Positions 702 through 25,623 of a stretch of 64,000 nt of DNA are shown here, piece by piece. The stretch spans positions 9,130,011 to 9,194,010 of the forward strand of contig NW_002060945.1 in NCBI RefSeq assembly GCF_000150275.1. Direction: 5' to 3'. The notes under the pieces were generated by a model that was given only the letters and a program-made list of their open reading frames with translations, ran no database searches and was not told where the DNA came from. Positions within the stretch are counted from its first letter, which is position 1. The number at the start of each line of letters is the position of its first letter. Source of the stretch: Trichoplax adhaerens. Lineage: Eukaryota; Animalia; Placozoa. A program made the position numbers and the translations under genes.

Positions 702-3700
702 CTTGTTGGTTTTCGGAAGACGATGTTGACTCTTCTGCTTCTGTAGTTTCGATAAAGTAAATAATTAATACTATTATTACAATTACTCGTCCAATTTTAT
801 GCTATTACATCTAGCATTTCGTGCATCGTACAATTATTTTGCTGCACTCTTTAAGCATAAAATGCGTATTGTTGTATCATATAGTATTTACATCAAATAC
901 TGACTCCTCGATCAATCATGGCAAATTATACGCTAGCGATAAATGTCGAGCAATCATAACTGCAATTGATATCCAAGAGTGAACAAATCAATTTTGCAAG
1001 AATGAATTAACATTAACTAATAATCAGCTCTCCATAAAAGTAACCGATATGAGACCATATTGACCAACACTATAACTTAGAATTTAACAGTAAGTATTAG
1101 TAATTTTAGTTTAGATTCACGTATGCAACAACCCTATTCTAAGTATAAAGTAGCTTATAAGCCGTATGGATCCTTAAAAAGTAGATCATGCATTAAAGAT
1201 ATAGCTTATACTATAGCAATATTTTTAGCCTTTTAAATATTCGTAAGCGTAGCTACCGTAACAAAACTAGTGCAATAAATAATCGCCTAAAATGACTAAT
1301 ATAGATCCTTAAAGATAGATCAATATCAAAATTACAGATTTATCTCATAGCTCTAAATTTTAGCCTTTTTCAGTTTTCATAAGTATAGCTATCATGACCG
1401 ATACTTCAGTACTAATACAATAAGTAAGCATCAAAATGACTAATAAAAATCACAAATCCTAGTGGATTAAAATAGTCCCCAACAATCAGCAAGTTAAAAT
1501 TTAAGTCTTAGTAAGTGCATTTTACAATCATACCTAAAATAATCTTCATAGAAGGTGCTCCGGCAGCACGACTTTCTTCCTCTATACAGTGATTAAAAGT
1601 ATCGTGTTTGCTTAAAATTAAGTCTAATACAAGCTAATGATACCATCCATCTATAAAATAGCATTTTTTAGCACTTTATAGCGAATATTATGCGAAAATT
1701 GTGTTAGGCAATCGCTAAAGACACTTTTAATAACAAGAAAAAATTTACAGTATAGATGTAAATTATTTACAGTTAATAACTTGAAGTAGAATTTATGTGT
1801 GTTCCAACAATGAACTAAAGGTATATTATGCTTTAAATTCTATTATAACTCTAATAGGAAGGCGCTAAAATTGGACAATTTCCTATCTAAAATAGACTTT
1901 ATAATATCAATAATTACTTTCTGTTGACTCCGTCGTATTGCTTTCTTTACTTTCAGCTTCAGATTCTAATTTATGAACCAAATCTTCAGCTATCCGCTTT
2001 TGAGCTTGATATAAGGATATAATCAAGAAAAGATATAAAAATGGACTATCCAAAATAGATTAAAGGCAATCTTATCAAATATAAATTGTTCATGCTATCA
2101 TTTTTTGGATATTTCATTCTATCATAATTCTGTATACTAAGGCAAAGTAATTTTGTCAAAATATTTCACAACGAATCAATATTATACTTTCTAATTGGAT
2201 AACATTTTCTTTTAAGTTCTTCAATTCTTCCTTCATCAAATCATATTCTTCTTGTAAAGTTTGATTCATGAGTGATTCTTTGGCTAATGATTCCGATAAA
2301 TTGGTTTTTTCTACTATTACAGCTTTTTTCTCATCTTTATCCGTAGGGTAGAGTAAATATTTTCAATTAGAATTTAGTTAGTCCATTATTCATCGTTATT
2401 TTTATATAAAATTCTTGAAAGGATATGATAAACTTCAAATAGTATATTAATCTTACTAAAAATCTTTTTACTTCTTTATATTTAGAGTAACTCACTTTCC
2501 AGTTGGACTATTCTTTGCATCATATCATTTAATTCGGTATCTTTATCTTTTAACTTGGTCTCAATGGCTTCTAAATTCTTGTTGAGTTTATCTTTTTCAG
2601 CTGCAAATTATTGAAATTTGGTTATTAAGTTATGGCAGAAGTTATAGTAAAAGCTGTATAACTTTTCTACACAATGTATTATAGATCATGGCTAATTTTG
2701 ACGAATTATTTTTCCTCTCTACTTTGGTTATAATTATCCTTCAATAAATCATTCATAAAAAAGTAATCTTTCAGCAAATTAACTACAAACCCATTAATTT
2801 ATTCATAGCTCGCTCTCCTTCTCGTTTAACTCTCTCTAGTTCTGTAATTCTGTTCTTTAATTGATCAATTTCAGAGCTTTTGGATGATATTTCTTCCCGA
2901 AGCTTAAATTTTTCATGTTCTAGCGACTGTTTATCCCCTGTAAAATAGATTTTGAATTATAATTCAGGACTACGAGGAACAAGCAATTTGTAGTAGCCAT
3001 AATCCTGATAGCATATAAATGAAAAAATTGAATATCTATGGGCAATAAAAATTTGGCAGGTAGTTTCTTTACCACTTAAAAGTTGAATTTGTGATAAAAT
3101 TGCAGTAACACTCTCGCCTTTAGCAGCATCCTTTGCCTCCATTTCTTTTAGTAATTGCATCATGGATTTCTTTTCATCTACATAAAAATAGAATTTAAAA
3201 TAAAATTTGGAGAATAAACTACAAATATATTCAGGAATGGCAACTGTTGGTTATATCTATGCAGCCATATCCATTTTGATAAAATATTCTTTATACTATT
3301 AAAAACGTGATTCCTTGTCAATCTACAGTACAATGCTAAAATATATATTTGTTTTATTTCGCGAAATGGACTACTGAATTGTGCAAATCTCAGGGCTAGC
3401 AGACGTTTGCTCCTTTAAGATTGGGTAATAAGAAATCTTACTTTGCAGCTCTTTAAGCTCCACGTCTAAGCTATTAATGGTTTCTTCGTATGTTACAATC
3501 TTTCTGCCTAATTCTTTAATTTGAGTATTATACTCAATACCTTTCTTTTCGAGAGCTAGTTTGCCATTATTTAGAGCTTTATTCTCGCCTTAAAAACCAT
3601 AACAGCAAGTAAAAATTATAGTTAGTATTAAGGCATTTTCAAAATCTTAATGCAGTAGAATAACCTATAGCCACTAAGTGGAGTACAGCAAGGAGAATAT

Positions 3701-6700
3701 CCTGTTTACAAGTGTTAATCATAAGCCCAATTTAGCTTCACTGATACCTTTTAATTTTTCTAGTTTAGCCAACAACGTAACTAGTTGTTCGTCTTTATTA
3801 GCCAATTTCTGCTCTGTTGTACGCAAGTTAATGGCTAAAGCTTCCTTTTCCACTAAATGAGTAAATTAAAAAGTCATAAAATAGCCCGTATTCATATAAA
3901 GCGAAGTAGGTAAACAAATTTAATATCAATCATGATCCTTATTCGCAGTACTGTGTATAAATTGTGATTTTTAGGAAAATCTTTACTACTTCATAACCAT
4001 TTATTCTTCGTAATACTATTGTATCCAAGATAGTTGTCAACTAATAATAACTTCAATAGTTGTTTTCATAATTTTATTCTACTTTAGCTTAACTTTGAGT
4101 ATACACTGGTTTTATTAAAGATAGCTACTACGGGTTAACTGATGTAAATTCTCTTAGGATAGGTCAATAATATTCTACTTTATCTTAACGTTTAGGCTTG
4201 CATATCGTTACTAATATCTAACATGTAGACTAATTTATAGGAATTTGTAATTTGCATAGATATTCTACTTTAGCTTAACCTCTAGGCTTAAATGCCGCGA
4301 AAGTATGAACTAGTTAATGAGAGCTTGTAGAGATATGCCCGCGGATGATTTTGTAATAAAACTTTACGATACTTTAATTTAAGTTAAGAGCAGATTTTGT
4401 GAAAGATAGCCACTACCTAACTAACAGTTATGTACTTCTTTTGCTGACCAATATTGTGCTTTAGCTTACCTTTAACGCTTTCGAACTCTGTCTTAAAGTG
4501 CTCAATTTCCTTTTCTAGCTCAATCGTCTTAACTTGTGCATCATGAGCTTTCTTTGCTAATGCGTCATTTCGATCTATAGTGGTGTATGAGTAAATAATT
4601 GTGTTATTAGCACTTGGTATTTACCTCACTGTGAAACCATAGTCACTTAAATTATAAATCTATTATCCTCTTTGCTGCCCTAATATGTCATAAGTTTGTA
4701 TATATATTTTAAAAATTGAAAATCATTTCCATGCTAAGTTGATTAATGAGATACTTAAAAATTTAGCGTTAAATCATTGGAAAGCTTATATTCAGAACTG
4801 CTTTTGAGATTTTTAACTGATTCTTACTCAAATCGAAATAATTAATTTATATACTGCAAGGTATAAGAATTAATTTACATCAACTACTAAATATGGCCTA
4901 TCATATAAATTTAACTCACTTATAACCAGTAGCAAGCAGACTAACCTTGCAAATAACGCAATTCATTTTCTTTATCATTAACTTTACTCTGGTAATATTG
5001 AACACTTTCTGCTAATTTATCTTTTTCTTTAGCCAATTTAGACCTTTCAGCTAGTATTTCCAATTTTTGATATATCATAAACATAATAAAATATTAGCAT
5101 TCGATTCAAATCATTGATGCTGGCAACAAGTATTCTCGGGATTCAAAGTTCGATGAATAATTCCATAGGATATCAGGATATCCGGATAAAATGAAGGGGT
5201 AAATTATGAGTTGTTTTGTACAAACCTTCCAGTTGTGATATTTTACTTTTGAATTCTTGAATTTTGAGCTCGGTTTTATTTCTAAATTCTTCTAAATTGG
5301 CATAATCGACACCTTGTTGAAGAAAAACGATGAAAGGCAATATCATAAGAGAGGTTAGAGAAGGATTGGAAAATTGCTGTAATTTAAATTACTATTTACA
5401 TTACACTAATAATGCTTCTAATGATCAGATAAAAGATAAAATAATCAGAGAGGTTAAAGTGGGATTAGTAAATTGTTGTAATTTGAATTACTATTTTAAT
5501 TATACTTATAATGATCACTCCATTAGCTACTCTGATGATTTCAAAATATAGAAGATAGTTAACATACTAGAATTTCGTCGTTTATCTTTCGATGAAGCTT
5601 TATTAGAGCTAGGAGCATCTAATGTGCTGCTACTTTTTTCTCCTAGACAGGTGTAAGAAGAATGAAAATATTATGATACTTTGTAGAGCTGATATTATTT
5701 TAAGTCCAAATAAACATCATTCAGTAGGCTAACTATATCGCTTTCAATCTATCGATCAACTATTAGCCATTTTTACCGGATGGCTAAAGATGCTAATTCA
5801 ATATCTGCTAAAGCTTACTAATTAAAGTATATTTAAACTGGCAAATATACTGCTGGACTGAGCATAGTATTGCTAGAAACTATCATCCTTTTGCGCTATC
5901 TAAACGATAAGATTGATCTAAAATATCCTTTGACGTATCAATTATACCTTCTAAGCAAATTGATAGTCATACTTTACTTAAGCTAAACGTGCTATTTATT
6001 TTAGCAAGACCTCGAATACTGGCTTTGTCTTCTTTATGTTCATTCGGTGATAGGAGACTAAGATCTGTGTCTAAAAGAAAGCCATATCATCAATATACGA
6101 GTCATTTTATATTTTTTGGACTATATAAGAAAAAGATGATCAATTTTGAAATAGGCAATCAATCCAATTGTATATAAAATTAGCTGTTGTAATGGGACAG
6201 TTAATAAAATGATTCGTTCAATATTACGGATATTTAAATAGAATTCGTTAAATGTTATTCGATATTAACTGTGTCATGAGACATTTAAATAAAATTATTC
6301 GTTCAGTATCACGGAAATTGAAATAGAATTGGTTAAATGCTATTCGATTTTGACCGCGTTATAGGACATGTAATAAAACAATTTAGATTAATGTTATGGA
6401 CTTTGAAATAGAATTCATTAATTACTACTGGATATTGACTGTCATCGTAGGATAGGGAAGGTAATAAAAATGATTATTTTAATATAATATGGACTGTCAT
6501 CACGAGATAGACACAGCAATAATCCATTAAATATGATGCCAGCTAACTGAATTGGAATGTATCTATTTCTGTGATACATTGGCTATCATAAGTCCAGGGC
6601 AAGAAAAATATTGGATTAAATGATCCATTACTGCTATTAAAGTATAATTCATTTATTTTCCTGCTCATTAAATTAACCATAGCGAAGAAAAATGCAATAG

Positions 6701-9262
6701 TTTTAATTGAATATAGAAGAAATACCATTTAAACGGATACTAATCCTTGAATGTTTATTGGAATGGTAAATGGACAATATAGCGATATTAAAAAACTTGT
6801 AGAGTTTACAGTGCGAGTACATGATAAAAGAAACTCCTATCATAAATAACGGCCCATCGAGGTATAAACAGTAGTTATAAATTTGAAAGTAGTTCTTTTG
6901 ATTATATAGGCATTACGCTATTCCAACTCAAATGATAGAAGAAGGATTACCTTGATTAACACTTAGTCTGCTTTCACGCGAGGCTAAATTCTGATTTGAT
7001 TTTCTTTTCAGCGAGTTATCCTTGCTGACGAGACTTTCTACAATAGATGAATAAAAAATGAGACAGTAGAGTTAGCTAATATCAAAGAAAATGGGTAGGT
7101 AATCGATTTAACTTTTCCACCAGTTTTCTAATACCGATAGTCGACAACTGAGCTACCAATTTGAAAGAAAATGTATGCACAATCTTGCACATTTCAGTAC
7201 TAAATTGATAATGCACGTATTTGACAGCTGAGCTATCCATTTGAAAGAAGATTAATGAGATATTGCCCTAACTTCTCTTGGTAAAATTGATCATGCAAGT
7301 GGTCGATTTAATAGGAAATGCACAAGTAATCTATTTTACTTTTATTTTCGTTTACACCACAAAATGAATCAGTAAGTTAACTGATTTAATGGATAATCTG
7401 CAAATCAATGAATCATTGGTCTGGTGTGATGAATTTGTAAACATGTCCGTTCAATTCTCAAACTGAACGTGGAAAAGGATAATACTATCTAGTTTAACCT
7501 ACTACGACTGGATTTCGCTATAGTGAGAAAGAATTAGGCGTAAATTATATTAAAATCATGTTTAGCAGAAAGAATGCTCAAATCTACTCTTGCAATCTAG
7601 TCGAAAAACCATCCAATTGAATTGTATAAAGCAATTACCCCTACTACTGCTACTGCTAACACGACGTCCGTGATTTGTAACAAATTGAACATCTTTAATG
7701 GAATCCAGGATATGTTCTTTATTGGGCATGGAACGAACTAGCTTTTCCAACTTCTGCTTAGCTTTTCTACCGTAGTGGTTGTCGTATAGAATGTAAGTTT
7801 TTTGCGCTTTCCTCATGGCTTTCTTGAGATGCTCAATGGCTTGTTCAGGATTTATCTTAACGCCATATCCGTTCATATACATAACACCTAAGTGGTAATG
7901 AATGCGAACTTGTTTAAACCATTGCTTTTCCAAAGCATTTCGATAGCTTTGTATGGCAGTTTCGAAAAATCGAAATCCTTTCTCGGAATTCCTCAGTAAA
8001 GTACTTGCCGCTTTCGTATAGACTTTCCCTAGGCGATATTTTGCATGACCAGAATAAGATTCATCATCTGAACGAGCAGCATAATCATATAATTTTATAG
8101 CTGAATCAAATGAGGATGGAGAAACCTTTTTCTTCTCTACTAATTTTGCTAATTTAATATACGCTGGAAAGTAATTCATTTTAGCAGCACTAGCATAGTA
8201 ATGCGCTGCTAATGAATAATCGATACCGACACCGATGCCTTTCTCGTACATAAAGCCTAAAATTTGCAATGCTAATTCATTACTTTTATCGCTGGTATAG
8301 TCATGAGCAACAGCTGCAGTTTGGAATAATTTAATAGCATTTTGGACGTTGGATTTAACACCAGCAATGCCAAGTAAATTATATAAGCCAAGATAGTAAC
8401 CGACCACGGTATAATTATATTTGGACGATTGCTTGAAATATTTATAAGCTTTAATTAAATCTTCTTCATGACCAACGGATAAATAGCCAAATAACAAACA
8501 GCCAAGATAAAATTGAGCTCTTGGATGGCCAAGTTGCGCCGCTTTACGCTCATATTCTTCTTCTTTATGCCGATCTTTAGTTACACCTAAGCCATTACGA
8601 TACATTTTAGCACCCAAGTTAAAATAAGCCGAGGAATTACCAAGTTGTGCTCCACGCTCGAAATAATTTAACGCTTTACTGTAATCTTGGTTATTACTAT
8701 ATTTAGTCAATTGTAAGGTAATATAACCCAATTCGTTGTAGATTTGACCAGCTTCTTGATTGGATAACTGGTCGATCGACTGTAATTTTTTCAAGTAATT
8801 AATTCGAGTTTCTTCTAGTGCTCTTTTCCAATGACTTGAGCGCTTATAATGACTCCATAATTCGTCATGGGCTCGGGTAAACCATGGATCTTGCGACGCC
8901 GATTTAAGATACATGTGTAACTTTAATTGAATTAATTCTTCTTCATCGACAATCCGTACACAATCGGATGTTCTGCCGCCTTCTCTAGTACCATATAATT
9001 GATAGGCAGTATATTGAGCGCCAGGATGATTTCCTTCAGCCGCAATTTTATAATTATAAAATGCTTTCATGGCATCTTTTTTAGTCGATCCTAGTCCATA
9101 TTGGTAGACATAGCCTAGTTGGTAGTAAGCGCTTGGATCGTTACTTTTCAAGCTATCTACTCCATAATTTTTAGATGCATCGTCTTGTAATTTAATTTGC
9201 AATTGATTTGCAATATAGTGTTCGATAATATCGTTAATTTCTAATTTATTAATGCCGGCCAT
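702..9262 (-). CDS. Sel1-like repeat (SLR) + long coiled-coil protein, multi-exon, 3' end outside the window
   Basis: Large exon 9262(ATG, MAGINK)..7639 carries many Sel1 repeats (AYYQLGYVYQYGLG..KDAMKAFYNYKIAAEGNHPGAQY; LGFMYEKGIGVGIDYSLAAHYYASAAK; LGVMYMNGYGVKINPEQAIEHLKKA). A G|GTAATT donor at 7638 joins in frame to exons 7037-6951, 6070-6011, 5642-5568, 5291-5226, 5050-4946, 4574-4470, 3852-3748, 3588-3442, 3177-3073, 2937-2791, 2600-2496, 2334-2188, 2004-1918, 1581-1534 and 740-702. All introns are GT-AG and phase 1; the joined frame is stop-free and E/K/L-rich. The Sel1-to-coil junction is inferred, not transcript-proven. Confidence 0.75.
1165..1445. repeat. Diverged intronic tandem duplication, ~137 bp
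   Basis: GATCCTTAAA..TAGATCA...TTTTAGCCTTTT...AAAATGACTAATA occurs twice. Confidence 0.65.
4070..4465. repeat. Degenerate intronic repeat, ~90 bp
   Basis: TATTCTACTTTA(G/T)CTTAAC recurs at ~4075, 4171 and 4261, with related copies near 4370 and 4455. Confidence 0.55.
5333..5515. repeat. Intronic tandem duplication, ~100 bp x2
   Basis: AGAGAGGTTA...AAATTG(C/T)TGTAATTT(A/G)AATTACTATTT...TA(C/T)ACT(A/T)ATAATG occurs twice. Confidence 0.8.
6185..6510. repeat. Degenerate intronic repeat, ~85 bp x3-4
   Basis: AAATAGAATT(C/G)(G/A)TTAAAT..TA(T/C)T.GAT.TT.AC.G recurs at ~6236, 6321 and 6406. Confidence 0.65.
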
Positions 9263-9289
9263 GATACGAAAATTCAAGTCTTTTACCAC
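7562..9289 (-). CDS. Sel1-repeat ORF (uninterrupted ~1.7 kb; probably exon 1 of the gene above)
   Basis: 575-aa ORF in the track with repeated A-x-x-x-LG-x-x-Y-x-x-G-x-G-V...A..Y..AA..G Sel1 consensus units. Confidence 0.9.
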   Translation of the reverse strand: MVKDLNFRIMAGINKLEINDIIEHYIANQLQIKLQDDASKNYGVDSLKSNDPSAYYQLGYVYQYGLGSTKKDAMKAFYNYKIAAEGNHPGAQYTAYQLYGTREGGRTSDCVRIVDEEELIQLKLHMYLKSASQDPWFTRAHDELWSHYKRSSHWKRALEETRINYLKKLQSIDQLSNQEAGQIYNELGYITLQLTKYSNNQDYSKALNYFERGAQLGNSSAYFNLGAKMYRNGLGVTKDRHKEEEYERKAAQLGHPRAQFYLGCLLFGYLSVGHEEDLIKAYKYFKQSSKYNYTVVGYYLGLYNLLGIAGVKSNVQNAIKLFQTAAVAHDYTSDKSNELALQILGFMYEKGIGVGIDYSLAAHYYASAAKMNYFPAYIKLAKLVEKKKVSPSSFDSAIKLYDYAARSDDESYSGHAKYRLGKVYTKAASTLLRNSEKGFRFFETAIQSYRNALEKQWFKQVRIHYHLGVMYMNGYGVKINPEQAIEHLKKAMRKAQKTYILYDNHYGRKAKQKLEKLVRSMPNKEHILDSIKDVQFVTNHGRRVSSSSSRGNCFIQFNWMVFRLDCKSRFEHSFC

Positions 9290-11471
9290 AATAACCTTGA
9301 ACTACAACAAGCATAAATTCGATAAGAGAAGACATTAATAACCCATGGTAGTTATCTCCATCTATTTATAAAATTCTTCCGAATAAGGATAATTTTTAGG
9401 TCATTCAAGTGGTTTGGCTACAACTAGATGGCTAAGAAAGGAATAATTAATTTTGGATTGGGTTAAATATCTTATTGTCAACGTCGTCGTGATGGTACTA
9501 AAAGACCAGATAGAGAGGAGAATGGTACTGAATAGCAGCATTTACTCCTAGATGGAGGTTGGAAGTAATAATGATTACTGGAAATGATACAGAGTTTATC
9601 CAATTGTATCATCCAGTCGACTGGCATTTAATGGAACAGCTGTTGAATAACATCTAAAATCAACATTTATTATCATGCTATTATTGAGTAGGAGGTATGA
9701 GGTAAAATTCCTCCTAGTATCTGGATATAGATCATATTTGCATTGCTCATGAATGGTTCACGAAAGAAACTTATAGTAATTGAATACGTTTAAATAGACA
9801 AACTATGGCAGTAGAATGTTACTATAAGTTAATATTCTGCTAGACGATCTAGTCAACTCTAGCGTAGGTATGAATCAAAATATACTAATTGCTTAACCTC
9901 TTGGATAAAGCATCGTGATCATAGTTAAAATTCAATACCTTAATCTCTGATTAATCCAAAAGGTATTTCCGTATGATTAATGTTTAATTACTATAGAAGA
10001 CAGCAATAAAGCTGTTCTATCAGCCAAAAAACTGGATCGAGAAATAGGGATTGAAGTACAATCCAACAGGTTTCTCTAATTCGGGGTATTGAAAAGTGAC
10101 AAATTTTATAATTGGTTAATAAGAACAAGGCTAGTAGACTATACTGACTGAATTATTATTTGCAATGCAATTATTAGCAGTAGAGCAAATAATATTGGAA
10201 ACTTGGGATTAAAGTAGTTCATTTCTTAAACTTGAATAATCCTAATACGATTACCATGATGGAAGAATTTATCGAGTATTCTTCTAGGCAAAATGAAGTC
10301 AGTTTGGATTGATTAAAGCAGTTTCTCTGATTGTGCTAGCTCCTAAATGCCATCTATATACTAATCATAGGAAAGATCAATAGAGTTTCGAAGTGATTCA
10401 ATTTTTTTCATTCCATTGGTAATCGTTAGTGCTTTAAACAGCACGTAGAAACTATAAACTAAACTTGTAGACGCGATAGAATTCTCTATGATTTAATTTG
10501 ATCGAGTACCGTAGTTTACTAGAATACTATAGCATCAGTGTAGATGGATAAGTATTATACACTAGCATGATAATTTATTTACACGAGTATATTGATATTA
10601 AGCATAACAAGCAATAATAAAATCTCAAGACTACATGCTTCATTTCCTATCTTTAATAATTAATCATCAATGATTGTAGAATTGAGAAAATCCTAAAGCT
10701 GTTTTTCAAGTTTTGTGATCATCCTGATGTTGAAATTATTAATGATATGGGTTTTGGGTAAAGAGATTACGGGTAAATTAATTAGTTTTATCCGGCATTG
10801 TCAAGCATAAAAGAATTAAAGTAATTTGATATATCAGATGTCAAAAGTAGATGAACCTAAGCCATTTTTAGCCTTGAATGAGGATTAATATTAAATTTGT
10901 CATAAATGGATCTACAGTACGAGCGCTAAGTCTAAACCCATTCTAAAAGATGTTTAAATCAGTTCACGATTTATAGATCACAAAACTAATATTAGCTGCC
11001 AAATTGTTTATTTAAATTACTCAATTTCATGGATATCGTATAAAAAAATAAGCATTTCCTTAAGAAAAGCGTTATATAAAAATGTACAGTGAAGGAACTC
11101 AACTAGTTATCAATTGTAAATATCTCTATCTATGTCTACTAAGCCTTCATTCATTACAAGCAAAGCTGATCCAAGTAATATAAAATTATATGAATTTATA
11201 TTACACAGGTAGAAGTATCAATATTTTAAATTGTCTACCTAAGGAGTAATGTTTTATATACAAGACTAATCCGAAATATTATACAACAATTGTAATGAAT
11301 TAGAGTTCATAGGCACTCCATTCTACAGTCTTTACCTAATACAGGAATTCGTCTGATTTTTGTATTATGTCAGCTTTCCTGTAGCAAAGATTATGCATAA
11401 AATTGTTAAGTTTAAATGGACTACTGTCTGATGAATTCATATCCCATCCTAGGCAAGTTCAGTGCGATTTT

Positions 11472-14400
11472 CTAGGAATTAACTCCAACTGATGTCTGGT
11501 TTTGTGGTGCAAGTTTTGCGCTAAGGCTATCCTCAGCGTTACTGGCGGTGTCACTAATGGAAGAAATAGAAATTTTACTTCGATAGTATTTTACATTAAA
11601 TAGTATAGGATATTATTATAATATTTCATTTCTCGGCAATATGTTATAACCATATGGAGTCAGAATAATGATTACAGCCTTACCCAGCTACGGACTGTCT
11701 TCGTCCCAAGTCAAAAATAGGATACTCTTCATCTAAATATTCCGGGCCAGCTTTTTCTACTGTAAACGGAACAGTTGTCATCGTTAATACCGAATCATAT
11801 TACATAACTTAAATTAAAAGAAATACAGCAAGTTACTATACGACCCTGACTACTTTATGAGTTAGAGTTAAAGTGATATAACCTATGCGTTAATGAAAAA
11901 ATTCCTAATTAGAATATCCCAACATAACTCTACATAAGTCTGTCTACTTACTACTGTTGGCCAATTGATCAGTAAGCCATTCAGATTGAACCCCAGATTG
12001 AACCCCGGACTGAACCCCAGATTGCGGCAGCTCTTGACGAATATTTGGCTATAAATAAAAGTAATTTAAATTAGGCACAGTTTTATTTTTTAGATGGATA
12101 TTAATGACCGACCAAGAAGTGGTTCACAGATTAGCTAAGGTTATCTTATCAAATTTTCACATTAAGATTTTTAAATTTGTAGAGAATTATAATATAATTT
12201 ATAATCCGAATATGTACGCGCTAGAATCGTACCAGTGGCTTTTTATGTGTTTCAGTTGAATTGTTATTATCAACCTGTAATCGAATAACCAGCAGACGGA
12301 TCATCATTAGTATTGATATTATCGATATTAAAATACCTAATAAATAAATGCAGTGCTTAATTCACTTTTTCTTCATTAAAATATCTATCAGTCTTGTATA
12401 CGAGTTAAGCAGTTAACGAAAAATCACACCTTTTAACCAGATAGTACACTTTTGATAAGTAGATTAATTTTTTATCTGGTGACTGAATTGTCTTAGTGAT
12501 TACATATAGCTTAGCTTAGCCCGATTTACCCAATTGCATCGGTTTCATTTCATGTAGTAGTAATATGATCATGCATACAGTATTAAATCTCGATAAATGA
12601 TAACATGGATTGTTTATCAATTATAATATAATAAATCATTTAGGGTAGGGTATTGACCGTTAATTATTCTATATCGTGACTCTCCAAAAACAGTTAATTA
12701 AATTTAGTGTTACTAAATATAACATCCTAGAATGCATTTAGGAGTGTGTCATAACGTCTGAATATTAATAAAATCCATTAGGATTACCAAGTAGGCGACA
12801 CCAGCAGGATGTAATGTTGCTGCTTGACGCTGAAGCGAAGCCCTTAAAAAGCTCTCATTTTTTAGTGCCATCATACTAAAGTAAACAATTATAGCATAAG
12901 ATATCTTTTAAGTAGGTATTCGTTAACATCATGAAATAAATATTGATTCGGAATAATATAGGGTCAAAATTAAAGCGAGCTTACGTTTGCTGAATTACGG
13001 TCGTTTTCTTTTCCCATGTCATATTGATTCTTCGTATTTCCTTTTCCAGTCTAAATAAACATCATATCATCATTATTTTGACAATTATACTACTAGACAT
13101 TATAGAAAGCTGATTGATAAATGCTAATGTACTCATTGACCTAGAATATCAAGTGATAAGCAAACCCAAATTTTTGTTTGCCTCTATGATTCATACAATA
13201 TTATGCTATTACAAAATAGCTACTTCACTTTTTTTATAGCTTTACCTGATGATTTCGTTTCGTTGCCGCTGTACTAATCCTTCTAACTTTTGGATCGTTA
13301 ATCTATCGTCAGCAGTAACAGGACTACGTTCAATCCTTTCCTATTGAGTGATTGGATCAAAAACATAGATATTTAATATTTCGAATTTACTGAATAGAGG
13401 ACCAGTTATGTTTATTTTATATTTGGCTAACCATCAGTAATCGTCGGTCGGCAATTTTCTTTTGAGATAATGCCGCATTGAAAGCTTCCTTTTCACGGGA
13501 TTGTAACGCAGATCGTTCTCTTTCTATCTGTTCGTTCATCTAATAATTAAAAGCAATCAAATGCTTAGCTTTAATCTCTTTATTTATCTAAATCCTAAGC
13601 CAAAATAGCTCGCTTAGTGTGAATCTTACATCCTGCGTAATTTTATCAATATGGCGTTTCATATCTTTTTCATGTTGCTTCTTTTCTTCACTAAACTACA
13701 TTGGATATGAGAATAAATGAAAAACTGTGTACGTAAATTTTATTGGTAAAATATAGTAAACTGCTGTAGAATGTTCACTGTATAACGACTGATTTCTAAT
13801 TTGTTAACAAATTGGCTCTTACAGTTTCCATAATTTTTTCTTTTTCTTTCTCACTAGTTGCTCTGATTAGATCGATTTCATTTTGCAGCTAATATTTATA
13901 AAATTAACTTATTAGAATATCAAAGGCAGTTAGAAGTATTTAAATGGCATTAGCGGCAAATGGAGATATAAATCTGCAAAGAAGCTCATTTGAATAGCTA
14001 TCTATTCATAAGCTAATAACTAACCTGACGAACTTTCAGTTGCTCTTTGTTCAGAGCTTCGGTAACTAAATCCTTCTCTAAAGCTAAATTTCGAAACAAT
14101 ATCAGTTTATTGTGTTACTCGCTGCTTTAAGCAGATTGAGCTATCTATTGATTTAAATTTTTCCTGTGATAAATTATTATTTTGCGTGTAGCCTATCCTA
14201 CTTGACAAGCTAACTAAATGACTGATTATAAATGAGTTTTACCGATTTAAATGATAAGTTAACATCGCCATTAATATCTCGATTGACTCGATTAACAACT
14301 ATACGCATGTATAATAATAATAACATCTTACATATTTTACTCTTTTCTCTTTTCTTTCGATCTATCTCTTTTGCCATCTCATCAATCTTTTCTTCTAGCT

Positions 14401-16951
14401 TGTTGACTATAGCATTTAATTCTTCAATTTCTGTATTATCAGGTTCTGGAGGTAGAGGAGCATCTGCGGCAGCCTTTATCCGTTTATAAAATTGAAAAGA
14501 AACATAGGGATATAAAATATCAAAAATTGCTTTCCGAACGATTAAAGGAAGGTAAAGAATTGCGCTAAATAAGATTTTTGAATTCTAATCGAATGTAATA
14601 CCTCATATAACATTTGGTTATGTTGAGCCTCTTGGCGCGCTTCTTCCAACTCGTGTTGTAATCGTTTAATAATATCATTATCGTCACCAGCATCATCGAT
14701 AAGGTCTTTAATCCTAATTAGAATTGATTTATAGTTCAGATAACTTACAGTATAGATCACTTTCATGAGATTTGTAGATTAAATTGGTATCTGTATCTTT
14801 AAAGTTGACTTATTGACTTTAGCTACCAAACTGATAACATACTGTTCTTCAAGTTCTTTAATTGCTTTCTTATATCGATCAGTCTCTGCCTCTATCTGAT
14901 CATCGAAAAAATCACTATGATCGATTGCAATTTGCTTGATAGCATTCGATAGTTGTTGCCGACAACTATGCCTGACGACTTCAACTCTCTATATCAATCA
15001 AAGTAAAAGCGATATTTTAAGTAACTTAGTAATATATTTAACATCTACTTTCAGAACTTATACAAATAATCAGCCTCATTTCAAGAATAATCTTGGTTAC
15101 CTGTTTATGAAGTTTTTCTAATTCTTCCACTTTATCATTAACGCGACAATATCTACAACAATTAAATTGATAGAGGAAAAAGAGTTAATTTACAATCAAA
15201 TAGTAGGGCATTACGGATATAGGATCATAACAAGTTTAATTTCATGTATCGATTAGAAAAAGTATAGGTGTACTTACAATTCTAGTGAACGCTGTTCTAA
15301 TCTATTTTCATAATCTGCTAGCATATTATGTTTAGTCAAACGAAATTCTCTTTTCAATCGGTCTAACTCCTAATTAGGCAACAAATGTTTCATGGTAGTA
15401 TAAGTAATTAATTATTGACTTTAATGGATTTAGAATAATTCTAATACCACGTTATAACACATTTGTTAGCTTGAATAACAAGATGATGCACAATGTCCAT
15501 CTATTTAGTTATATCTTAATAAATTACTGCATGCAATTTAATCCTTAAATTTTATATGTTCTATTTCAAGAGCAAAGTTATGACAGAACATACTAGACGC
15601 GCCATCAAAGGTAGAGATAGTCCCAGTTATGTCCTTTATAAATTTTTACCTCAATTAAATCTTGTACTACTGTTGTCATTTCCTTGATATCAACAATTTC
15701 TGATGTTTCGGTTTGTGTAGCAATATCTTTATAAAAGAAGCCAGCTTTATAGTCTTCAGCCAAAGATGGTCTATAGTACAGCGAATTAGAATTATATTAA
15801 CAACGGCACATTATTTACTGTAATTCCCTTTAATCAGTAAAGGTGTATGATTTCTGTGGTTACATGCTTCCATTAGCGTGTAGCCATCGTTTTGTCGCTA
15901 TATACAAATGCATAATAAATAAAATTCATTATTGCGCGTGCTATACTGAAACTTTTATATCAATTACTGGAATAGTGTGATACTTAAAATAATATAATAT
16001 GGGTCGGCAGGGGATGATGCTAGTTCGTTATAAACACTCAAATTTATAATTTTGCGATAATGATTTATATTTTTGATATTAAAATATCCATTTATGATTA
16101 GAAATGTAAAATAGGTGAAAGATAGTCATCTTTGAAAGAAATTAAAGTATCGACAATGCATAGTAGGCGATAACAGACACAGCCATACAGAAAGGGCTAA
16201 TAATGTGAAATGAAATAGAGTGACCTTCATGTATAGTATATCGTTATTTATTAATGACTAAGATTCTAAATGGTTATAAACTATATCTAAAAACGAAAAG
16301 AACGATAATTTACAAATATTCCTCTTTTGGTGGTAAGGAAAGTTGATTCATTAAAAATATAGCGGTGTTTAGTTAAGTCATATTGAATGGGAATTGATTT
16401 GGTATTAACTGCATTGTATAGTACTGGCAGTTTTCTGATCGTTGATAACTGTTGGTATAATATTTATTCGGACTAATCAAGACAATCTATTTTAATATTA
16501 TCCTATCTAATTTACCCTATTATAAGCTGCAATTTTTTAAATTGATAGTATGATAAGGTAGCTGAAAGATTTTATTAACACTGTAGTAAACACTTAATCA
16601 AGATGCCCTTTCTTATAGTATGTTTTAGTGCATTATAAAACTTGCATGCAGTAGTAGTATTTCATTACTCAATAAAAATATCAAGATGAATTATGTAATT
16701 TATCAATTGAATGCTGTCCCTAAAGTAGAATAGTATAGCAGCTATCGGAAACGTACTCGCCGAGTATCGTCTAAATCAATGCAAAGAGGCCACATCATGA
16801 CTTACTTGAATTTTTCATAAATACTATCATCATCCTCAGTATCAAGATTTTTGATAGAGTCATTCTCTTCGGTAATACTTTTTCTAGCATAGCTATTTGT
16901 AGGGGATTGTGAATTACTTTGGAGATTGCCGAAAGATATCCTAGTCGCCAT
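11472..16951 (-). CDS. C10orf67: C10orf67-like coiled-coil protein (DUF4709 N-terminal, DUF4724-like C-terminal), multi-exon
   Basis: ATG at 16951 (MATRISFGN...), exon to 16806. Next exons give KPSLAEDYKAGFFYKDIATQTETSEIVDIKEMTTVVQDLIE/ELDRLKREFRLTKHNMLADYENRLEQRSLEL, matching my recollection of the C10orf67 N-terminus. Later exons give LEKEIRRINMTWEKKTTVIQQTMMALKNESFLRASLQRQAA, resembling its conserved C-terminal block. Stop TAG at 11474-11472; a possible alternative last exon lies at 11378-11336. Confidence 0.75.
11982..12024 (-). repeat. 12-bp coding minisatellite encoding (QSGV)3 QSE in the C10orf67-like tail
   Basis: Plus strand cagattgaacccc/cggactgaacccc x~3.5, in frame in exon ~12048-11952. 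Confidence 0.75.
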
Positions 16952-17257: not shown

Positions 17258-20200
17258 GTTACGCATGCGCAGCACTGTCGAAGAGATTTAAAAATACTGC
17301 ATGATAGAGTTTGAAAATTTTCTTGTCGCCATTTTGCGTGGAGTGGAAAAACTTTCATTGCTTCAAAAAGTATGTCAATGAGGCAGAAAATCTTTACACT
17401 ATGCTGCAAACAAAACCTTATTTCATGACATCTGTTCTACACGCGTGTGGATAGCATTGTACTGTTGGCGGTATTGCCTTATCATCAACAATTCTTAAAC
17501 GTAGGAGATGGAATCGTACAGTTTACACGCATTCAAAGTGAATGCACGCGTATAAAAACGTATACCAATTTAAAATCCAGAGGTAAAAGTGATACTAGTG
17601 AAATTCCAGCGTAAAGCACGTATAGCTATGGACTACTAAGAGGAAACCTAGGTTTTCTTCCAATAGTCCATGGTGTAGCATACAATACTCATATGTTTAT
17701 ATCGTTTACGTATACAGTAATATTCGTCTGCTATACACACACGCACAGAAGCCATTTTTTGCCGCATTTTGGCTCTTGGTCAGTCAATTACTGTATATTT
17801 GGAGGATATCCGTTCGATGTCAAGGTCTTTAGCGTTGGATACAGAAACAGTGTCACGACATAACTTGGTTTTGATCCATTCTGTAGAACTAATCTGTATT
17901 TTTTCTCGATCTAAAGTACAGTAGTACCGAGTATCGCAGGTAAATAATATACAGTATAGTGTATAAAATGGATACAGAATGCGTATTATGTACAGTAAAA
18001 ATCGGAATTAGACTCGTCGTCAGTCTGTTTTTAATTTTAGTAAGCTTGGCTGAGGAGAAGTGATATCAAGTACTTTTTGAGTGTCATGATAGAGGTTTAA
18101 AACAATCGCTTCTGCTCTGTCTCAAAGCTTTAATCGGGTACAAATGATCAGTTTTGCTTGAAAGTAACCGACGGCATGGTGCTTCGATCGAAATTATTTT
18201 ACCAGCTAATCTTAGCATTTGAATACTCAATGAATTACTGTATAATGGAATCTGATCGGGGATTAGCAAAGTCTTTAACAGCTATTTCTCTCATATCAAA
18301 TCTGAAATAATAATAATTTACTTCGTTACATGGTAACAGATTCATATAAACTTACAACTACAACAAGTAGGAGAAATTAATTCAATAGCAAAGGCCATTG
18401 AAGTTACAATAAGCTACAACAGCTATAGGATCTGAAAGCCGGATATCAAGATGGAATCTTGGCAAATTTATAAGCTATACTACAGTTTTTACGGATATCT
18501 ACTCATTTGATTAGCATTTTATCCTATGGAGAAAATAGGATTTTTAAAGCTATTTTCTTAAATGAATTTATTTATTTACTCTTATTGAGTAACTTAAGAT
18601 AAATAAATAGATACGGTCGGAAAGCGGAGTTACAGGGGTTATTCGATATCGATTAAGTACAATGTGCTCACGGAAGTTTTCTATTCTTATTGTTAAGGTA
18701 ATAATTCATAACCTTATCGCTACTATAACTACTTAGACAAGTCGTAGTAGCAATGTATTAAATCATAGGTAGATAAAGGGAGTAAAGTAAAACCATTAAT
18801 ATAGCGTATTTGTTAGTAATACTTGATCTTGGAGTTGCTGCGTCTGCAATCTGTCCAAACACTAAAATGGTATACTGAGACAGGCTTTACAGCGGATTTA
18901 TTGCTTTTACTAATTATTGACTGAATAACCCAATGATAAGTCATTACGATCACCTGCAATAGAACAGACAACAGAACAATCCAATTTACAACTATGGTGG
19001 AGTTATCCAATAAGAATATGACGATTACAGTTTTGCTAATGGGGCTAAAATAAGTAAGAGAAGTGAAATAGGTATACTGGCTTAAGTACAGCGTTATGCG
19101 CTTAGATATCACAATACTGAATAGTAGCTGTCTATTAGGCCATTGGAGGAGCATATACTCCCGAGTCCTTGCTTATTTGATACTTGATGGCAACAATAGG
19201 GGTGTACATAAAGTACAAATTTAAGGTTCCAAATTTTCAGTCATAGGATATGAAATTTCAATAAAAGGACTAACCTATCATTGCCGTGATTTTATGCGGT
19301 ATAGACGGATATGCTATGCTTGCTATTGTATAGACTATATTAGTAGGATTTATGAGGTAAAAGCACAAGGTCAGGAAACAAAGGTACCTATTCTTATAGA
19401 GGACTAAACTATTTTGCAAATACTTGAAATATTTCTAATTTAAACTAGTCATAATATTTACGGAAAAAGATTATTTTTAAAGTCATCGTCAGGAGACTAG
19501 GTGTTTTCTAAAACACTAAGCAATTTCAACAGATTCATAAAGTGTGATTTTGCATAGTTGATTGCCATAATAATTGGTCTATTATTATGAGGTTACGTAC
19601 TTGAGATGAAGCAGGTTTACCTGATTTTCCCAGATAGGTTAAAAGCAACAGATCAGAACCTTAACCAATTTCCCTTTACCAATGATTTCCATATGATCAA
19701 ATTGTGTTTGCAAGCTGTCTCAAACTATGCTTTTACGTGAAAACAATTTTTCTTCATCAATAATTACTTACTGGATCGAATAACATTTTACCACCTGTCT
19801 CAAACTATGCTTTCGTATTGTAATCATTGCAGTCCATCCATCGCATTATCCCCCCGAAAGCAATATTGGAATAGTATTGCAAATAGGTTTGATATAGGTT
19901 ATGAAATGATAGGATATTGTTAACGGAAGATTGAAGTATACTGTCATGGTTAGCCCCTACAAATATCAAGCTATCGTATTTCAGTTTTTGAGACATAAAA
20001 CATTGAATACAGTATCTTTCGATTATTTTGACACTTTACCAAGTTGACGCAAAGATTGCCTGCAAGTCAAGCCTCCTACCGGCAAAATATTGTATTTGTA
20101 TTTTCCACCCGTGTATAATAACATGCCTATTTTGTAGCATGCAAGACTATTCAAATGATTGCAATTAAAGTATTGCCACCAAGACAGCATAAAGGGATGA

Positions 20201-20513
20201 TAAACGGCTTGTGGAATTTTTGATTTACAGAGCCATGGACTACTCGACCCCAATTTCCCCCCTGTTCGTTACCGCTGCTTGGTTGGGAAATTTTGGGTTC
20301 AATGGTCCCCGACCGAGGCTGTCTTGGCCTTGCAGCGAATTGACAATGTCACGCTCTTGCTTTCATTCAATGCAAAAGTAAAATGAATCTCATCCAAGTC
20401 ATGGCGAGTCGTAGTTTCCCATTTTTTACATTGCTATTTCCACCCAAAATAAAGGATAGTCTATCCCCCCCCCCCAAAAAAAAAATATGCAGGGTAGACG
20501 AGTCGTAGTTCAC

Positions 20514-20545
20514 GCTTAGCAGATCGCTTTGGCGGTCTGCTAAGC
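20514..20545. other. 14-bp hairpin with 4-nt loop (one U-G pair)
   Basis: GCTTAGCAGATCGC-tttg-GCGGTCTGCTAAGC. Confidence 0.85.
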
Positions 20546-21430
20546 ATTGCCAGATGCATCAGTGGTAGTGAAATTGAATGGATGTGCAGTTCAAAGACAA
20601 GAGTGGTGAGGCACAAGTGTCATAGCAATCCGTGGTAGCAGAGTGCGCTTGACGTTATCCTAGTCCATCACGTCGAGTGAATGTGCAATCGGTGACCCGG
20701 CGGCATACGGTACAATGCAGTTACAGCGGATCGGATGAATGTGGCCAATCAATGCTGTCTTCAAGCAGACTAGTTCGTTGCAGTCGATCGATCCTGTTTA
20801 CAATGGTAGAGTCAAGTACGTCAGTCAGTCAATAATGCGATCGACACCCAAAATGACCTGAATTCAAGTGTAGCGTACTACGGTGAGGTCAGATTGAAAA
20901 GTGAATTATTCACAGCGGCTAGCTATTGGTTTATACCAAGGTGACAACCACCTCTATGCTGCGTAACCCAATCAAATCAGTCAATTTATTATGATTAAAA
21001 GAATGATGCAGGTCAGTCTAGGGTACTACGGGTGTCCTTACTCGTCACCCCTACCGGTTGACTTGGAAAACTCCCAAATAATGTCGATCAAGTTGTCGCT
21101 GGTAGTATGGTCATCAGAGCCATGACAGCGTGACTGGGTCATGGTCAACTGTATGGTACCGGTAAAGCGACAAAACTAGAATTCCAATCAGACACGGTCA
21201 GCTCATATCACGTCCATTCCAACCGCGTCTCTAGCTGCCATACCAAGATGGACAGTGTAAAATGCGTTGAAAAAGGGCCTTGCAGGATAGCTGGAAGGAT
21301 AATATACAAGTGCAGCGTTATGGACATTCGTTAAAGGGATGTCCAACATGAATGTGTGTACACTGTACCATCGATAGGCTTGTAAGGCACTCTTGCCAAA
21401 GCCAAGGAGAGGGAAAAAAACAGTTCAATT

Positions 21431-21897
21431 GTACAACATGGACTAAACCGCTGTACACATAGTTATACCATTGAATTTAGTCATTTATCACTGTATTGAT
21501 CGTGAATTATTGTACAGTATAGAACGAGAATGCTATATGGTATCCCTCTTCTTTCCCAATACAGTAATAAATGATAACTTTGAGTCATAGTACAACATGG
21601 ATTAAACCGCTGTACACATAATTATACCATTGAATTGAGTCATTTATTACTGTATTGATCGTGAATTATTGTATAGAACGAGAATGCTATATGGTATCCC
21701 TCTTCTTTCCCAATACAGTAAATGATAACTTTGAGTCATAGTACAACATGGATTAAACCGCTGTACACATAGTTATACCATTGAATTGAGTCATTTATCA
21801 CTGTATTGATCGTGAATTATTGTACAGTATAGAACGAGAATGCTATATGGTATCCCTCTTCTTTTCCAAATACAGTAAATGATAACTTTGAGTCATA
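21431..21897. repeat. Near-identical tandem triplication, 151-159 bp unit
   Basis: Units start GTACAACATGGA at 21431, 21590 and 21741 and end TTTGAGTCATA; they differ by a few SNPs and indels. Confidence 0.95.
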
Positions 21898-23715
21898 GCA
21901 ACCGTATCGAATCAAATACATCACTCGATCCTCGGTAGGCAAATACCAAAGCCTACCGACCTATTTCCGTAAAGTGCAATATATTGGGTTCGTTCTCCAG
22001 TCAGCTACTGTAATTGGAATGAAAGTAGGCTACAGTTTAGCGCTACAGTCATCAACTCTTTTCTTGTTGAATCACGTCTAAAATGTTGGCGCCTGTAACT
22101 CTCACATTGACCTTTCTCCGTTTTGTTGATTAGCAAATACGCATCAAGTGTATCCCCCCCAAACAGGCGATGAAAACCATTTCACAACTTGTCCATAGTA
22201 TTTATACGTATGCATTGCCGTAGGTCATCGTACAGGTTTTACTGCATGTTTGTCCAACTTTATGGAAATAGTATGGGTATTATTTTGGCTCCATTCAAGA
22301 TTGCATGTATGCGTGTATTTTTTCCATCAGAACTGGATATATCCCCTTGCATGAACGCCGCTGGGGGTTTATTCTTGGTTTATTCTTTCATTTTGTTTTT
22401 TTGTTAACCGGATTACATCAGTCCGTTTTTCATCAAATCAAAAAAGTCATCCCCAAACGTATCTATTTGAATACCCAAGTCCATTCCTTGGAAAAGGCAT
22501 GGAGTCAAATCATCCTCCCTTCAGTGGAATTGTCATTTTGCTTGGTGACTGACGAGTTTTGCAATGCCTTTTTTTTAATTTTTATTTTTTCGGGAAAGGG
22601 GGGGCGGGGGGTTATCTCCAGAATGAAGGCCGTAAGATTTCCATTCCGGCTATCCTACTGTATGATAAGTGCTAGCATCAAAAAGCCTGACAGTACTACG
22701 CAAGCTGTTGTTCTCTTTCAATTTTTGGCTGAAAATAAATGGACATCGATGATAACATGTGGAATAGAAGAATGTATGACGAGAAAGATGATTTTCAAGT
22801 TAGATTGATCGGATGATCTTGTACCATTTTGAAGGGTAGAAGATAGACGCTGACAATACTTTGGTCAATCGATCCAAGTCCAACCACCATCGATGGTGAT
22901 ACACAGTCCATTAGTGAGGCACTATACCATGACTATATCGTCAAAGGAAAAAGAGCGACATGATAAGTGCACAATGCTGCACCTTGTACAAATTGAGTTA
23001 TTATTGTTATTCAATAAGGTTGCCATTGCAAGGTAGAAGTGGATCTTCTTGTTCCATCATAGTCAAATACAATATCAATAGAAGACTGTTTCAACACAAT
23101 CTAGCCCTTGTCCAAGCCGCCACTACGCATCATCGTACTGCACTGCCTAGAATAACAATGAATGCACGTATTGATTCTCTTCCAGTTTAAGGTAAATGTC
23201 AGCCAAAGGGCTTGTCAAGGCAAAGGCAACTGCAAAAAGGAGGAGGAGAGAACGGTGAAAAAAGGCCTTGTGCCAATGAAGGGGGAAGAAACATTTTTTT
23301 TTACAGCTTACTTGGATAGAGTAAACTGGTTGTGTGCTTGTGTATTGAACACGTTGTAATGACGCTTTCATCATCCCAACCAACCTTGACAGTGGTTGTT
23401 ATCCAATAGATCTCCAAGTGCAGACCACTGCCAACCAACTGGTCGATGCATTGCAATTGAACTGTTTGGGAAGCAACCAAATCACTCTACCTAATTAGGA
23501 ATTTGCTACCTGTAGTTTGGGGATCTCCAGTAGTAGATTACGCTTGGATCATTACAACCCACGTTGAACCAATTCGTTGGCTCACCACATTGGGTGACAG
23601 CTTATCACTCAAGCCAAGTTTTTTTTTTCCCATCCTAGAATTGATTGGCAACACTTTTCCAACCACATCCTAACGACGTCGACGTGTCGTGGTAAATCCA
23701 ACTTTTTCAACTGCA

Positions 23716-25623
23716 ATGACGAGCACCAATAACCAGAGTCAACGTTGCCGAATTCGAATATTCCATAATGTTGAATTAGGTGTAATTCTACGCAATGGTA
23801 AAGAATATTTTTGCTTAACTCAGTTATACGATCGCTTATGGCCAAATACATCACGTATGACCACCTTTAATAGGATCGATAGGTTAAAATGCAAAAAATT
23901 AAGTTGTACTTTAGATGAATTGAATATGTTGAAAGGTATTAAAGCTCTTGGCAGCACGGCAACACGGACTACTCTACTACCTACCGATGAAGTCGAAAGA
24001 CTGTATAATTATACTCAAGATAAGATCCAACGTCGAAAAAATAAGCAATTAAACACTTCCAAGCGTCCATATTCCAAATCCAATGATTCTCATACGCCTA
24101 ATCGAAAACGAAGTAATTTCAATAAAAGGCCATTGCTTGATCGTAACTTACTTAAAACGACAACAAGCAAAACTACACGGAAACCAATGACATCCAATGG
24201 GTCCGTCACCAATCATCCGAAAATGCCCAAAAATAAATCCCATACTAACCATTCTGATGCTAAATGTACAAAGCGCTCATTCATCAACAGGAAGAATGGT
24301 AAAAATAATACCAATAACGTAATCAATCATTCTGCCTTGCTCGCCTCTGCTACAAACGATTTTTATCCCTCCAATCAAAATGGTGGTCCAACCATAGCAA
24401 CAGTCTATCATTCCAACATCGACCATTACGACAAACATCATTTCTATCAAAATGATGACGACGATGTCTTTTCCGATGATGAATTATCATTCAATTTAGA
24501 TCAATTAGACGATGAAGAATCCAGTGAAGGATCTATCTTAACAACGTCATCATTTCTACTTGGATTGCAAAGTGCTACATCCATTTCATCCGATGATGAT
24601 GAAGGCTATACTCATAAAAATGGCATAAATCACTTGCAATCGAATACTATACCATTGGCAAATAATACTACAAGAAGAGGTCGAAATTTAAAATGTCAAG
24701 AGTTTGTTGACAATAGCGGGAAAAGTCTACAGCCGTCTGTCAATCAAGATAAGGAAGATTTTGATAATAATGGCATGCTAATAACTAAAGAAGATAAAGT
24801 GATGAAAGATGTTATAGTTATACGCAAGGATAAAAGTAGTCGATGGTTAGTTTCAAGTCGACAAAGTAGTCAAAGTGAAGAGGAAGATGTCGATAATAAA
24901 AATCTTTGCCGACCAACTAGTAAGAGATTAGCTTCCACTACTGTCAGAAACAACGGTAAAAAGGCTAATCGAAAACGCAGTCGTCTCGATTCTAGTACGC
25001 ATTCATCATTAAATATTCGAATTAGACGCGAGGGTAGTTCAGTTTCCGTCATTTCTAGTCATAGTAGTAATTCTAGTTACACCGATTGTACAACCGGTGC
25101 AAGTCTAATAAGTGGAGATGGTGCTAATGATAGCGCTCTCAAAGAAACCAATCTACAAAAAATGCCCTCCAATAACCCGATTCATCAAGATGATAGCGTC
25201 AAGACTGACAACCATAGTAGGAATACTAAGAAAACCAAGCGGAATATGGATATTCTACCGGATAAAACTGCCGATGATATCAATTATAACTCGCAAGTAG
25301 TTGGTAGAGGTCAAGCATTCCATCCTTATAAGAAAAATATGAATAACAACACCATAACCAAGAAATCCACTTTAGCTTCGTGGAATCGTAAAATAAGCAA
25401 ATCAAATTTCAGTATTCAATCAGTATTTAATCATTCTTTTCCCAAATTGACTGTTCAAAATGGCGACTTATGCCCTGCTGATAAACTTTCTATTCGAGAT
25501 GATAGCAAGATTGAAGATGATCATCCTATACTATCATGGGAAGTTGGCAAAGAAGTTCTCGGTAACAGAGTAACTAGCCGTCGTAAAAAGTCTGGCTTAA
25601 TTTCCAGGACTAAATTACCTTAA
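23716..25623 (+). CDS. SKIDA1: SKI/DACH-domain protein with EPOP-like C-terminal block (SKIDA1-like), single coding exon
   Basis: Track ORF 23689-25623, first ATG 23716. N-terminus (VELGVILRNGKEYFCLTQLYDRL..TSRMTTFNRIDRLKCKKLSCTLDELNMLKGIKAL..TTLLPTDEVERLY) matches the SKIDA1-type Ski/Sno/Dac domain. C-terminus (FSIQSVFNHSFPKLTVQNGDLCPADKL...HPILSWEVG) resembles the SKIDA1/EPOP shared block. The middle is acidic/Ser-rich low complexity with basic NLS-like runs. Confidence 0.85.
   Translation: MTSTNNQSQRCRIRIFHNVELGVILRNGKEYFCLTQLYDRLWPNTSRMTTFNRIDRLKCKKLSCTLDELNMLKGIKALGSTATRTTLLPTDEVERLYNYTQDKIQRRKNKQLNTSKRPYSKSNDSHTPNRKRSNFNKRPLLDRNLLKTTTSKTTRKPMTSNGSVTNHPKMPKNKSHTNHSDAKCTKRSFINRKNGKNNTNNVINHSALLASATNDFYPSNQNGGPTIATVYHSNIDHYDKHHFYQNDDDDVFSDDELSFNLDQLDDEESSEGSILTTSSFLLGLQSATSISSDDDEGYTHKNGINHLQSNTIPLANNTTRRGRNLKCQEFVDNSGKSLQPSVNQDKEDFDNNGMLITKEDKVMKDVIVIRKDKSSRWLVSSRQSSQSEEEDVDNKNLCRPTSKRLASTTVRNNGKKANRKRSRLDSSTHSSLNIRIRREGSSVSVISSHSSNSSYTDCTTGASLISGDGANDSALKETNLQKMPSNNPIHQDDSVKTDNHSRNTKKTKRNMDILPDKTADDINYNSQVVGRGQAFHPYKKNMNNNTITKKSTLASWNRKISKSNFSIQSVFNHSFPKLTVQNGDLCPADKLSIRDDSKIEDDHPILSWEVGKEVLGNRVTSRRKKSGLISRTKLP

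Follow-up and report, generated by a model that had tools for sequence, protein, structure and literature searches.

Collagen genes contain arrays of 54-bp exons, a pattern attributed to the tandem duplication of one ancestral exon; the structural unit is the Gly-X-Y repeat (9 nt) of the triple helix, and the exons join at phase-0 junctions. Many nebulin exons measure 105 nt, corresponding to a 35-residue module; the modules of nebulin and of the PEVK region of titin are actin-binding repeats or disordered PPAK motifs, and alternative splicing is documented for both proteins, for which the ideas of a “ruler” and a “tunable spring” rest on in-frame skipping. Here we describe a gene of the placozoan Trichoplax adhaerens, analysed in a 64-kb stretch of genomic DNA (hereafter the window; contig NW_002060945.1, positions 9130011–9194010, G000:C1412 of the 105.6-Mb, 1414-contig assembly used for the genome searches). 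The gene consists of 17 exons on the minus strand and encodes a protein of 1139 amino acids (aa). Eight consecutive exons, between window positions 2188 and 5050, each encode exactly 5 or 7 complete heptads of a coiled-coil rod. On balance we favour the reading that these are real exons of one gene, that its product is a lipid-anchored tether or scaffold with a presumably dimeric coiled coil, and that the whole-heptad exon sizes record duplication.

As in collagen, the exons at this locus each contain a whole number of structural repeats and share one repeat start point and one phase; the repeat is here the 21-nt alpha-helical coiled-coil heptad and the junctions are phase 1. With nebulin and titin PEVK the locus shares runs of symmetric module exons that can be skipped in frame, whereas its modules are heptads and the documented variation in splicing is that of nebulin and titin. 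The principle is that of collagen, nebulin and titin PEVK; the structural repeat differs. At the protein level, the long rod with a (here putative) C-terminal membrane anchor and a distal binding module recalls golgin-type and other membrane-anchored coiled-coil tethers. However, the protein has no GRIP/GRAB domain and no transmembrane tail anchor, and would instead carry a farnesyl group, with or without a palmitoyl group, at the sequence CCAIM, together with a Sel1 solenoid head. No sequence relationship to golgin-type tethers was found in Pfam or, among the matches listed, in searches with the rod plus tail and with the full protein. Lamin B1 ends in CAIM, and lamin B resembles the present protein in having a rod of ~350 aa followed by a tail with the same terminal tetrapeptide; it differs in that the Trichoplax protein gave no Pfam match to an intermediate filament (IF) rod or lamin-tail domain, in that its rod has no linkers or stutter, and in that a 541-aa Sel1 head replaces the short head. 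A search of the open-access literature, made by keywords only and so leaving absence unproven, yielded no account of a heptad-quantised exon array, the matches being unrelated (bZIP, HSF, TNNT3).

Whole-heptad exons of the rod

In the order of transcription, the rod exons are E1 (4946–5050, 105 nt, opening with AERSKL), E2 (4470–4574, 105 nt, DRNDAL), E3 (3748–3852, 105 nt, VEKEAL), E4 (3442–3588, 147 nt, GENKAL), E5 (3073–3177, 105 nt, NEKKSM), E6 (2791–2937, 147 nt, GDKQSL), E7 (2496–2600, 105 nt, AEKDKL) and E8 (2188–2334, 147 nt, NEKKAV), with 5 heptads in each 105-nt exon and 7 in each 147-nt exon. AG stands directly before every exon and GT directly after it; all are phase 1 on both sides, and the next-to-last residue is L or V throughout (8/8).

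The 17-exon model was worked out by hand before the corresponding database protein was retrieved. A search with exon E4 alone against 1.84 billion representative proteins then returned, at 100% identity over residues 751–798, GenBank entry RDD42610.1 (P0001) from Trichoplax sp. H2, a protein of 1139 aa labelled “Myosin-11”; besides this entry, only two unrelated repeat proteins were matched. The hand-built translation agreed with RDD42610.1 at every residue except one (E584G), and all junctions were identical. The H2 annotation is evidence-based, having been made in MAKER with Trinity transcripts (PMC6057997). A preliminary description of this DNA, made from the letters alone, had given the coordinates of the eight rod exons, their lengths of 105 or 147 nt, their phases, their opening peptides and the hydrophobic penultimate residue; all were confirmed, with identical borders in RDD42610.1. 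The splice sites it claimed likewise hold, the independent H2 annotation using the same junctions and not other lengths.

All 16 introns of the gene are phase 1, which would have a chance probability of 0.3^16 (~4e-9) if ~30% of introns are phase 1. In the rod run, every one of eight consecutive exons is phase 1-1 and measures 5 or 7 × 21 nt. The probability that eight independent symmetric exons would all be a multiple of 21 nt is (1/7)^8, or ~2e-7, although descent of the exons from one or two founders would leave the founder length alone free to vary, and the value would then be ~1/7 to 1/49. Across both strands of the 64-kb window, open heptad-patterned segments bounded by AG and GT, at least 105 nt long and a multiple of 21, occurred only in this gene. 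The whole-heptad exon lengths are beyond chance.

A region of 10.1 kb around the gene was 99.64% identical, with zero indels, to contig NOWV01000052.1 of Trichoplax sp. H2. Coding differences between H1 and H2 numbered nine, with eight synonymous and one non-synonymous, and a further 27 differences were non-coding. The ratio of eight synonymous changes to one non-synonymous change indicates purifying selection on the gene; H1 and H2 are too close for the conservation of exon number to be judged from this comparison.

Heptad register and exon junctions

The register was set with exon position 3 as a and position 6 as d, counting L, I, V, M, F, Y and W as core hydrophobics. These residues occupied 61% of a and 80% of d positions, compared with 7–17% of the other five positions, and this a/d register was the best of the seven possible in 8/8 rod exons. 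It likewise ranked first in all 28-aa windows between the start of L4, the last linker exon before the rod, and the end of E8. The single register through the exons that had been read from the sequence in the preliminary description was thus borne out, with no break at the junctions. The hydrophobic a/d pattern of a canonical heptad coiled coil is sustained without breaks over ~350 residues, and the rod as a whole comprises ~50 uninterrupted heptads, ~365 aa or ~54 nm, taking the rise of 0.1485 nm per residue along a coiled coil.

Every rod intron cuts the codon of an exposed f residue after its first base. In the rod the split codon starts with G or A, so that any exon–exon join gives a sense codon, never a stop, at the f position. 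Because each exon is phase 1-1, consists of whole heptads and is joined at f, any rod exon could be dropped or doubled without frameshift, stop or register break, as had been proposed for frame and register.

Polar heptads at exon starts

The first core a position was K, R or N in 8/8 exon starts but in only 6/38 interior a positions (Fisher p = 1e-5), and the preceding g position was acidic in 7/8 exons compared with 12/38 interior positions (p = 0.006). The corresponding motif, [DE][KRN]xx[LIVM], was found at 7/8 exon starts; its other occurrences are confined to the second heptad of three exons, E1, E6 and E8, where the opening heptad looks as if it had been doubled. Each exon is a structural module opened by a polar core layer. 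The exon-start motif may serve pairing specificity, flexibility or, as a purine-rich element, the enhancement of splicing.

At the start of E8 (2313–2334) an internal AG lies exactly 21 nt into the exon, and its use would remove exactly one heptad; this is unlikely because no pyrimidine tract precedes that AG.

Domain content of the encoded protein

The protein is made up, in order, of a Sel1-repeat domain, a Ser/Lys-rich linker, the rod, an acidic Ser/Thr-rich spacer, and a tail with RRxS motifs and CCAIM. The start codon and the Sel1-repeat domain (541 aa) are encoded by exon 1 (7639–9262, minus strand like all other exons), which ends in the phase-1 donor G|GTAAT with the junction SSSSSR|ESLV, as in RDD42610.1. 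PF08238 (Sel1) scored 121–128 bits against a cut-off of 30.7 bits (128 bits for exon 1), with several repeats recognized (4–7 scored). Met is absent from exon 2 through to rod exon 4, as would be expected if the gene does begin with the Sel1 exon. The linker is encoded by exon 2 (L1, 6951–7037, 87 nt, Ser/Lys-rich, matching RDD42610.1), exon 3 (L2, 6011–6070, 60 nt, carrying E584G, the sole amino-acid difference from strain H2) and exon 4 (L3, 5568–5642, 75 nt, Ser-rich with an RRNS motif). The coiled coil begins in exon 5 (L4, 5226–5312, 87 nt), whose 3′ end is already in the rod register. After E8, exon 14 (T1, 1918–2004, 87 nt) contains the end of the coiled coil and the beginning of the acidic Ser/Thr-rich spacer, and is followed by exon 15 (T2, 1534–1581, 48 nt) and exon 16 (T3, 702–740, 39 nt). 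All seven of these linker and tail exons are phase 1-1. The last exon, exon 17, lies just beyond the window (G000:C1412:9129593–9129936; L002 9926–9583) and contributes 115 codons ending in ...KLPCCAIM-stop, after which comes AATAAA. Three RRxS motifs occur in the disordered parts that flank the rod.

A CaaX box consists of a Cys, two mostly aliphatic residues and a final residue X, with X = M favouring farnesylation. The C-terminus of the present protein is such a box, with a second Cys adjoining. Going by this motif, the CCAIM tail would be farnesylated and perhaps also palmitoylated. A lipid at this site would anchor the C-terminus to a membrane, and the ~54 nm rod would then hold the Sel1 solenoid, a binding platform, tens of nanometres from it. 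The idea of a tether, put forward in the preliminary description, is strengthened by the CaaX box at one end and the Sel1 domain at the other, both of which had escaped that description.

Relatives and database name

Pfam returned nothing except Sel1 above the cut-offs for the whole protein, and sub-threshold coiled-coil noise only for single exons. Word-index protein searches with residues 545–1139 and with residues 1–1139 of RDD42610.1 gave, among the matches listed, only that entry itself and matches to the Sel1 part, and no usable match came from searching the ESM Atlas with the tail. When the tail exon, exon E6 and a profile of the eight rod exons were compared with the same genome, no paralogous exons were found, the best non-self match having E = 0.02. 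The combination of a Sel1 head, a rod and a CaaX tail thus appears confined to Trichoplax in the data searched. The Sel1 exon (7565–9301) itself has at least ~25 paralogs in the genome (including L006–L014), mostly single open frames of 530–640 aa; some others, containing two Sel1 modules, reach 1100 aa. Paralog clusters lie at C1414:1.92–1.96 Mb, C1401:1.26–1.32 Mb and C1411:0.57–0.59 Mb. Only the copy described here is known to be spliced to a coiled-coil rod.

With respect to the database name, the protein had no match to PF00063 or PF01576 at E ≤ 0.1, and the true myosin II tail gene was located on a different contig. Coiled-coil composition is the sole likeness to Myosin-11, and the name “Myosin-11” is an automatic mislabel drawn from that similarity. 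An assignment to lamins or intermediate filaments was also rejected, since no IF or lamin-tail family was among the Pfam matches and the register runs without a break.

Origin of the exon pattern

Most likely the rod was built by exon duplication long ago, and the whole-heptad exon sizes still record this. The stronger argument for duplication, compared with sequence similarity, comes from the architecture, in which the exons share one phase and one heptad position, fall into two length classes with a 35/49-aa alternation, and are separated within the successive pairs by introns of 159, 135 and 161 nt. Similarity was assessed against shuffles that kept each residue at its heptad position, chosen because ordinary shuffles overstate coiled-coil similarity. 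In an all-vs-all comparison (28 exon pairs), the pairs E1–E7, E3–E5 and E3–E7 gave p values of ~0.001–0.002. The 84-aa units E3+E4 (U1), E5+E6 (U2) and E7+E8 (U3), aligned ungapped at offset 0, shared 19, 21 and 16 identities out of 84 (19–25%), with p = 0.0005 for U1–U2, 0.0045 for U1–U3 and 0.08 for the third pair. In the history that we propose, a symmetric phase-1 exon would have undergone tandem duplication, followed at a later stage by duplication of a 35+49-aa exon pair; afterwards only whole-heptad changes in length would have been tolerated because any other length breaks the register. The doubled opening heptad in E1, E6 and E8 fits duplication under such a register constraint.

Several observations weigh against this reading or parts of it. 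A leave-one-out profile (hidden Markov model) test of exon homology was significant for none of the exons. Exon-to-exon DNA identity was 29–47%, near background, and local alignments of intron against intron gave nothing above z = 2.5 and no common sequence, so that any duplication must be ancient and the case for such a history is carried mainly by the architecture. The growth by exon and exon-pair duplication envisaged in the preliminary description thus finds backing in two of the unit comparisons and in three exon pairs, and none in the profile test, the DNA identity or the introns. No ortholog with the rod was found outside Trichoplax among the matches listed. Prenylation and membrane binding would follow from four residues, and the presence of all eight rod exons in the mature transcript, although probable, is an assumption.

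Two other origins of the pattern were weighed. Repeated acquisition of introns at a recurring sequence (...L-x | x-E-K...) by an originally intronless, repetitive coiled coil would yield one phase and one heptad position with no exon duplicated. In its favour are the conserved motif at 7/8 exon starts, junctions of the protosplice-like form (C/A/G)A(A/G)|G or similar, and the weak overall similarity between exons. However, the seven introns of the non-repetitive linker and tail are also phase 1, for which a rod motif cannot account, three interior copies of the motif have no intron, and the lack of common sequence among the introns speaks against recent repeated insertion by a single element; we regard intron gain as an improbable origin. 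It is far less probable still that the pattern arose by chance, or as an artefact of picking splice sites among the many AG and GT options of AT-rich DNA. Every rod exon does contain internal AG and GT dinucleotides, but the independent annotation shares the borders, the 1139-codon frame closes with these junctions only, the differences between strains stand at 8 synonymous to 1 non-synonymous, and nothing comparable occurs elsewhere in the window. For practical purposes the chance or artefact view is refuted.

Possible exon skipping and rod length

Some of the eight exons might be cassettes whose skipping or inclusion would give tether isoforms that differ in length by 5 heptads (5.2 nm) or 7 heptads (7.3 nm). 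In the fullest form of this proposal, Trichoplax cell types would vary the exons included, the polar core layer at the start of each exon would reset pairing, and the distance of the Sel1 head from the membrane would change in discrete steps of those sizes. Each internal exon is phase 1-1 and made of whole heptads, with an f-position junction codon that cannot become a stop; several donors (GTATCA, GTATAA, GTTTGT) depart from the usual consensus; and there are precedents in titin PEVK and the nebulin exon arrays. Against this, the single model on record, the only member of its 90% cluster, holds all eight exons, and the cassette property follows automatically from duplication of symmetric exons under a register constraint, so that a function in splicing is not needed. 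Among the matches listed, protein searches with RDD42610.1 contained no shorter variants, and no short fragment of transcript or genome origin was returned when the 72-aa stop-to-stop frame around E4 served as query. The splice-tunable ruler suggested in the preliminary description is therefore not supported, and both cassette splicing and a length-adjustable tether seem to us improbable, though formally possible, duplication under register constraint being the preferred account of the exon sizes. A length-adjustable tether of this kind, if real, would give the splice-tuned rulers of titin and nebulin their first coiled-coil counterpart, and this in an animal that has very few cell types.

Other features of the locus

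The intron between L1 and L2 contains an 85-nt tandem repeat (6195–6436) of 2.9 copies with 76% matches. In the intron between E2 and E3, a 19–30-nt motif, GTTAAGCTAAAGTAGAATA, is present in three copies ~90–190 nt apart (4074–4480) and is very similar to E2's own donor region (AAAG|GTAAGCTAAAGCACAATAT); at 0–1 mismatch it has no other site in the genome. They may act as decoy donors, or may have been left behind when the exon–intron junction was locally duplicated.

Elsewhere in the window, a second set of short coiled-coil-like open pieces, such as IEELNAIVNKLEEKIDEMAKEIDRKKREK, lies on the minus strand at 13420–15184 and is probably another multi-exon coiled-coil gene. Positions 20000–24000 form a GC-richer island (0.40–0.42 against ~0.31 around it), within which, at ~21300–21960, tandemly repeated open pieces (LCVQRFNPCCTMTQSYHLL...) are found ~150 nt apart.

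Implications

The locus presents an unusually clean coincidence of exon borders with the coiled-coil period, all rod introns lying in one phase and at one heptad position and all modules opening with a polar layer, and so offers a concrete example of how a long rod could grow by exon duplication under register constraint. The analysis also corrects a mislabelled GenBank protein (RDD42610.1, “Myosin-11”) and defines a lineage-restricted architecture of Sel1 head, rod and CaaX tail that is a candidate membrane tether. If splicing were to vary the number of exons, Trichoplax would offer a simple natural system for length-coded tethers.

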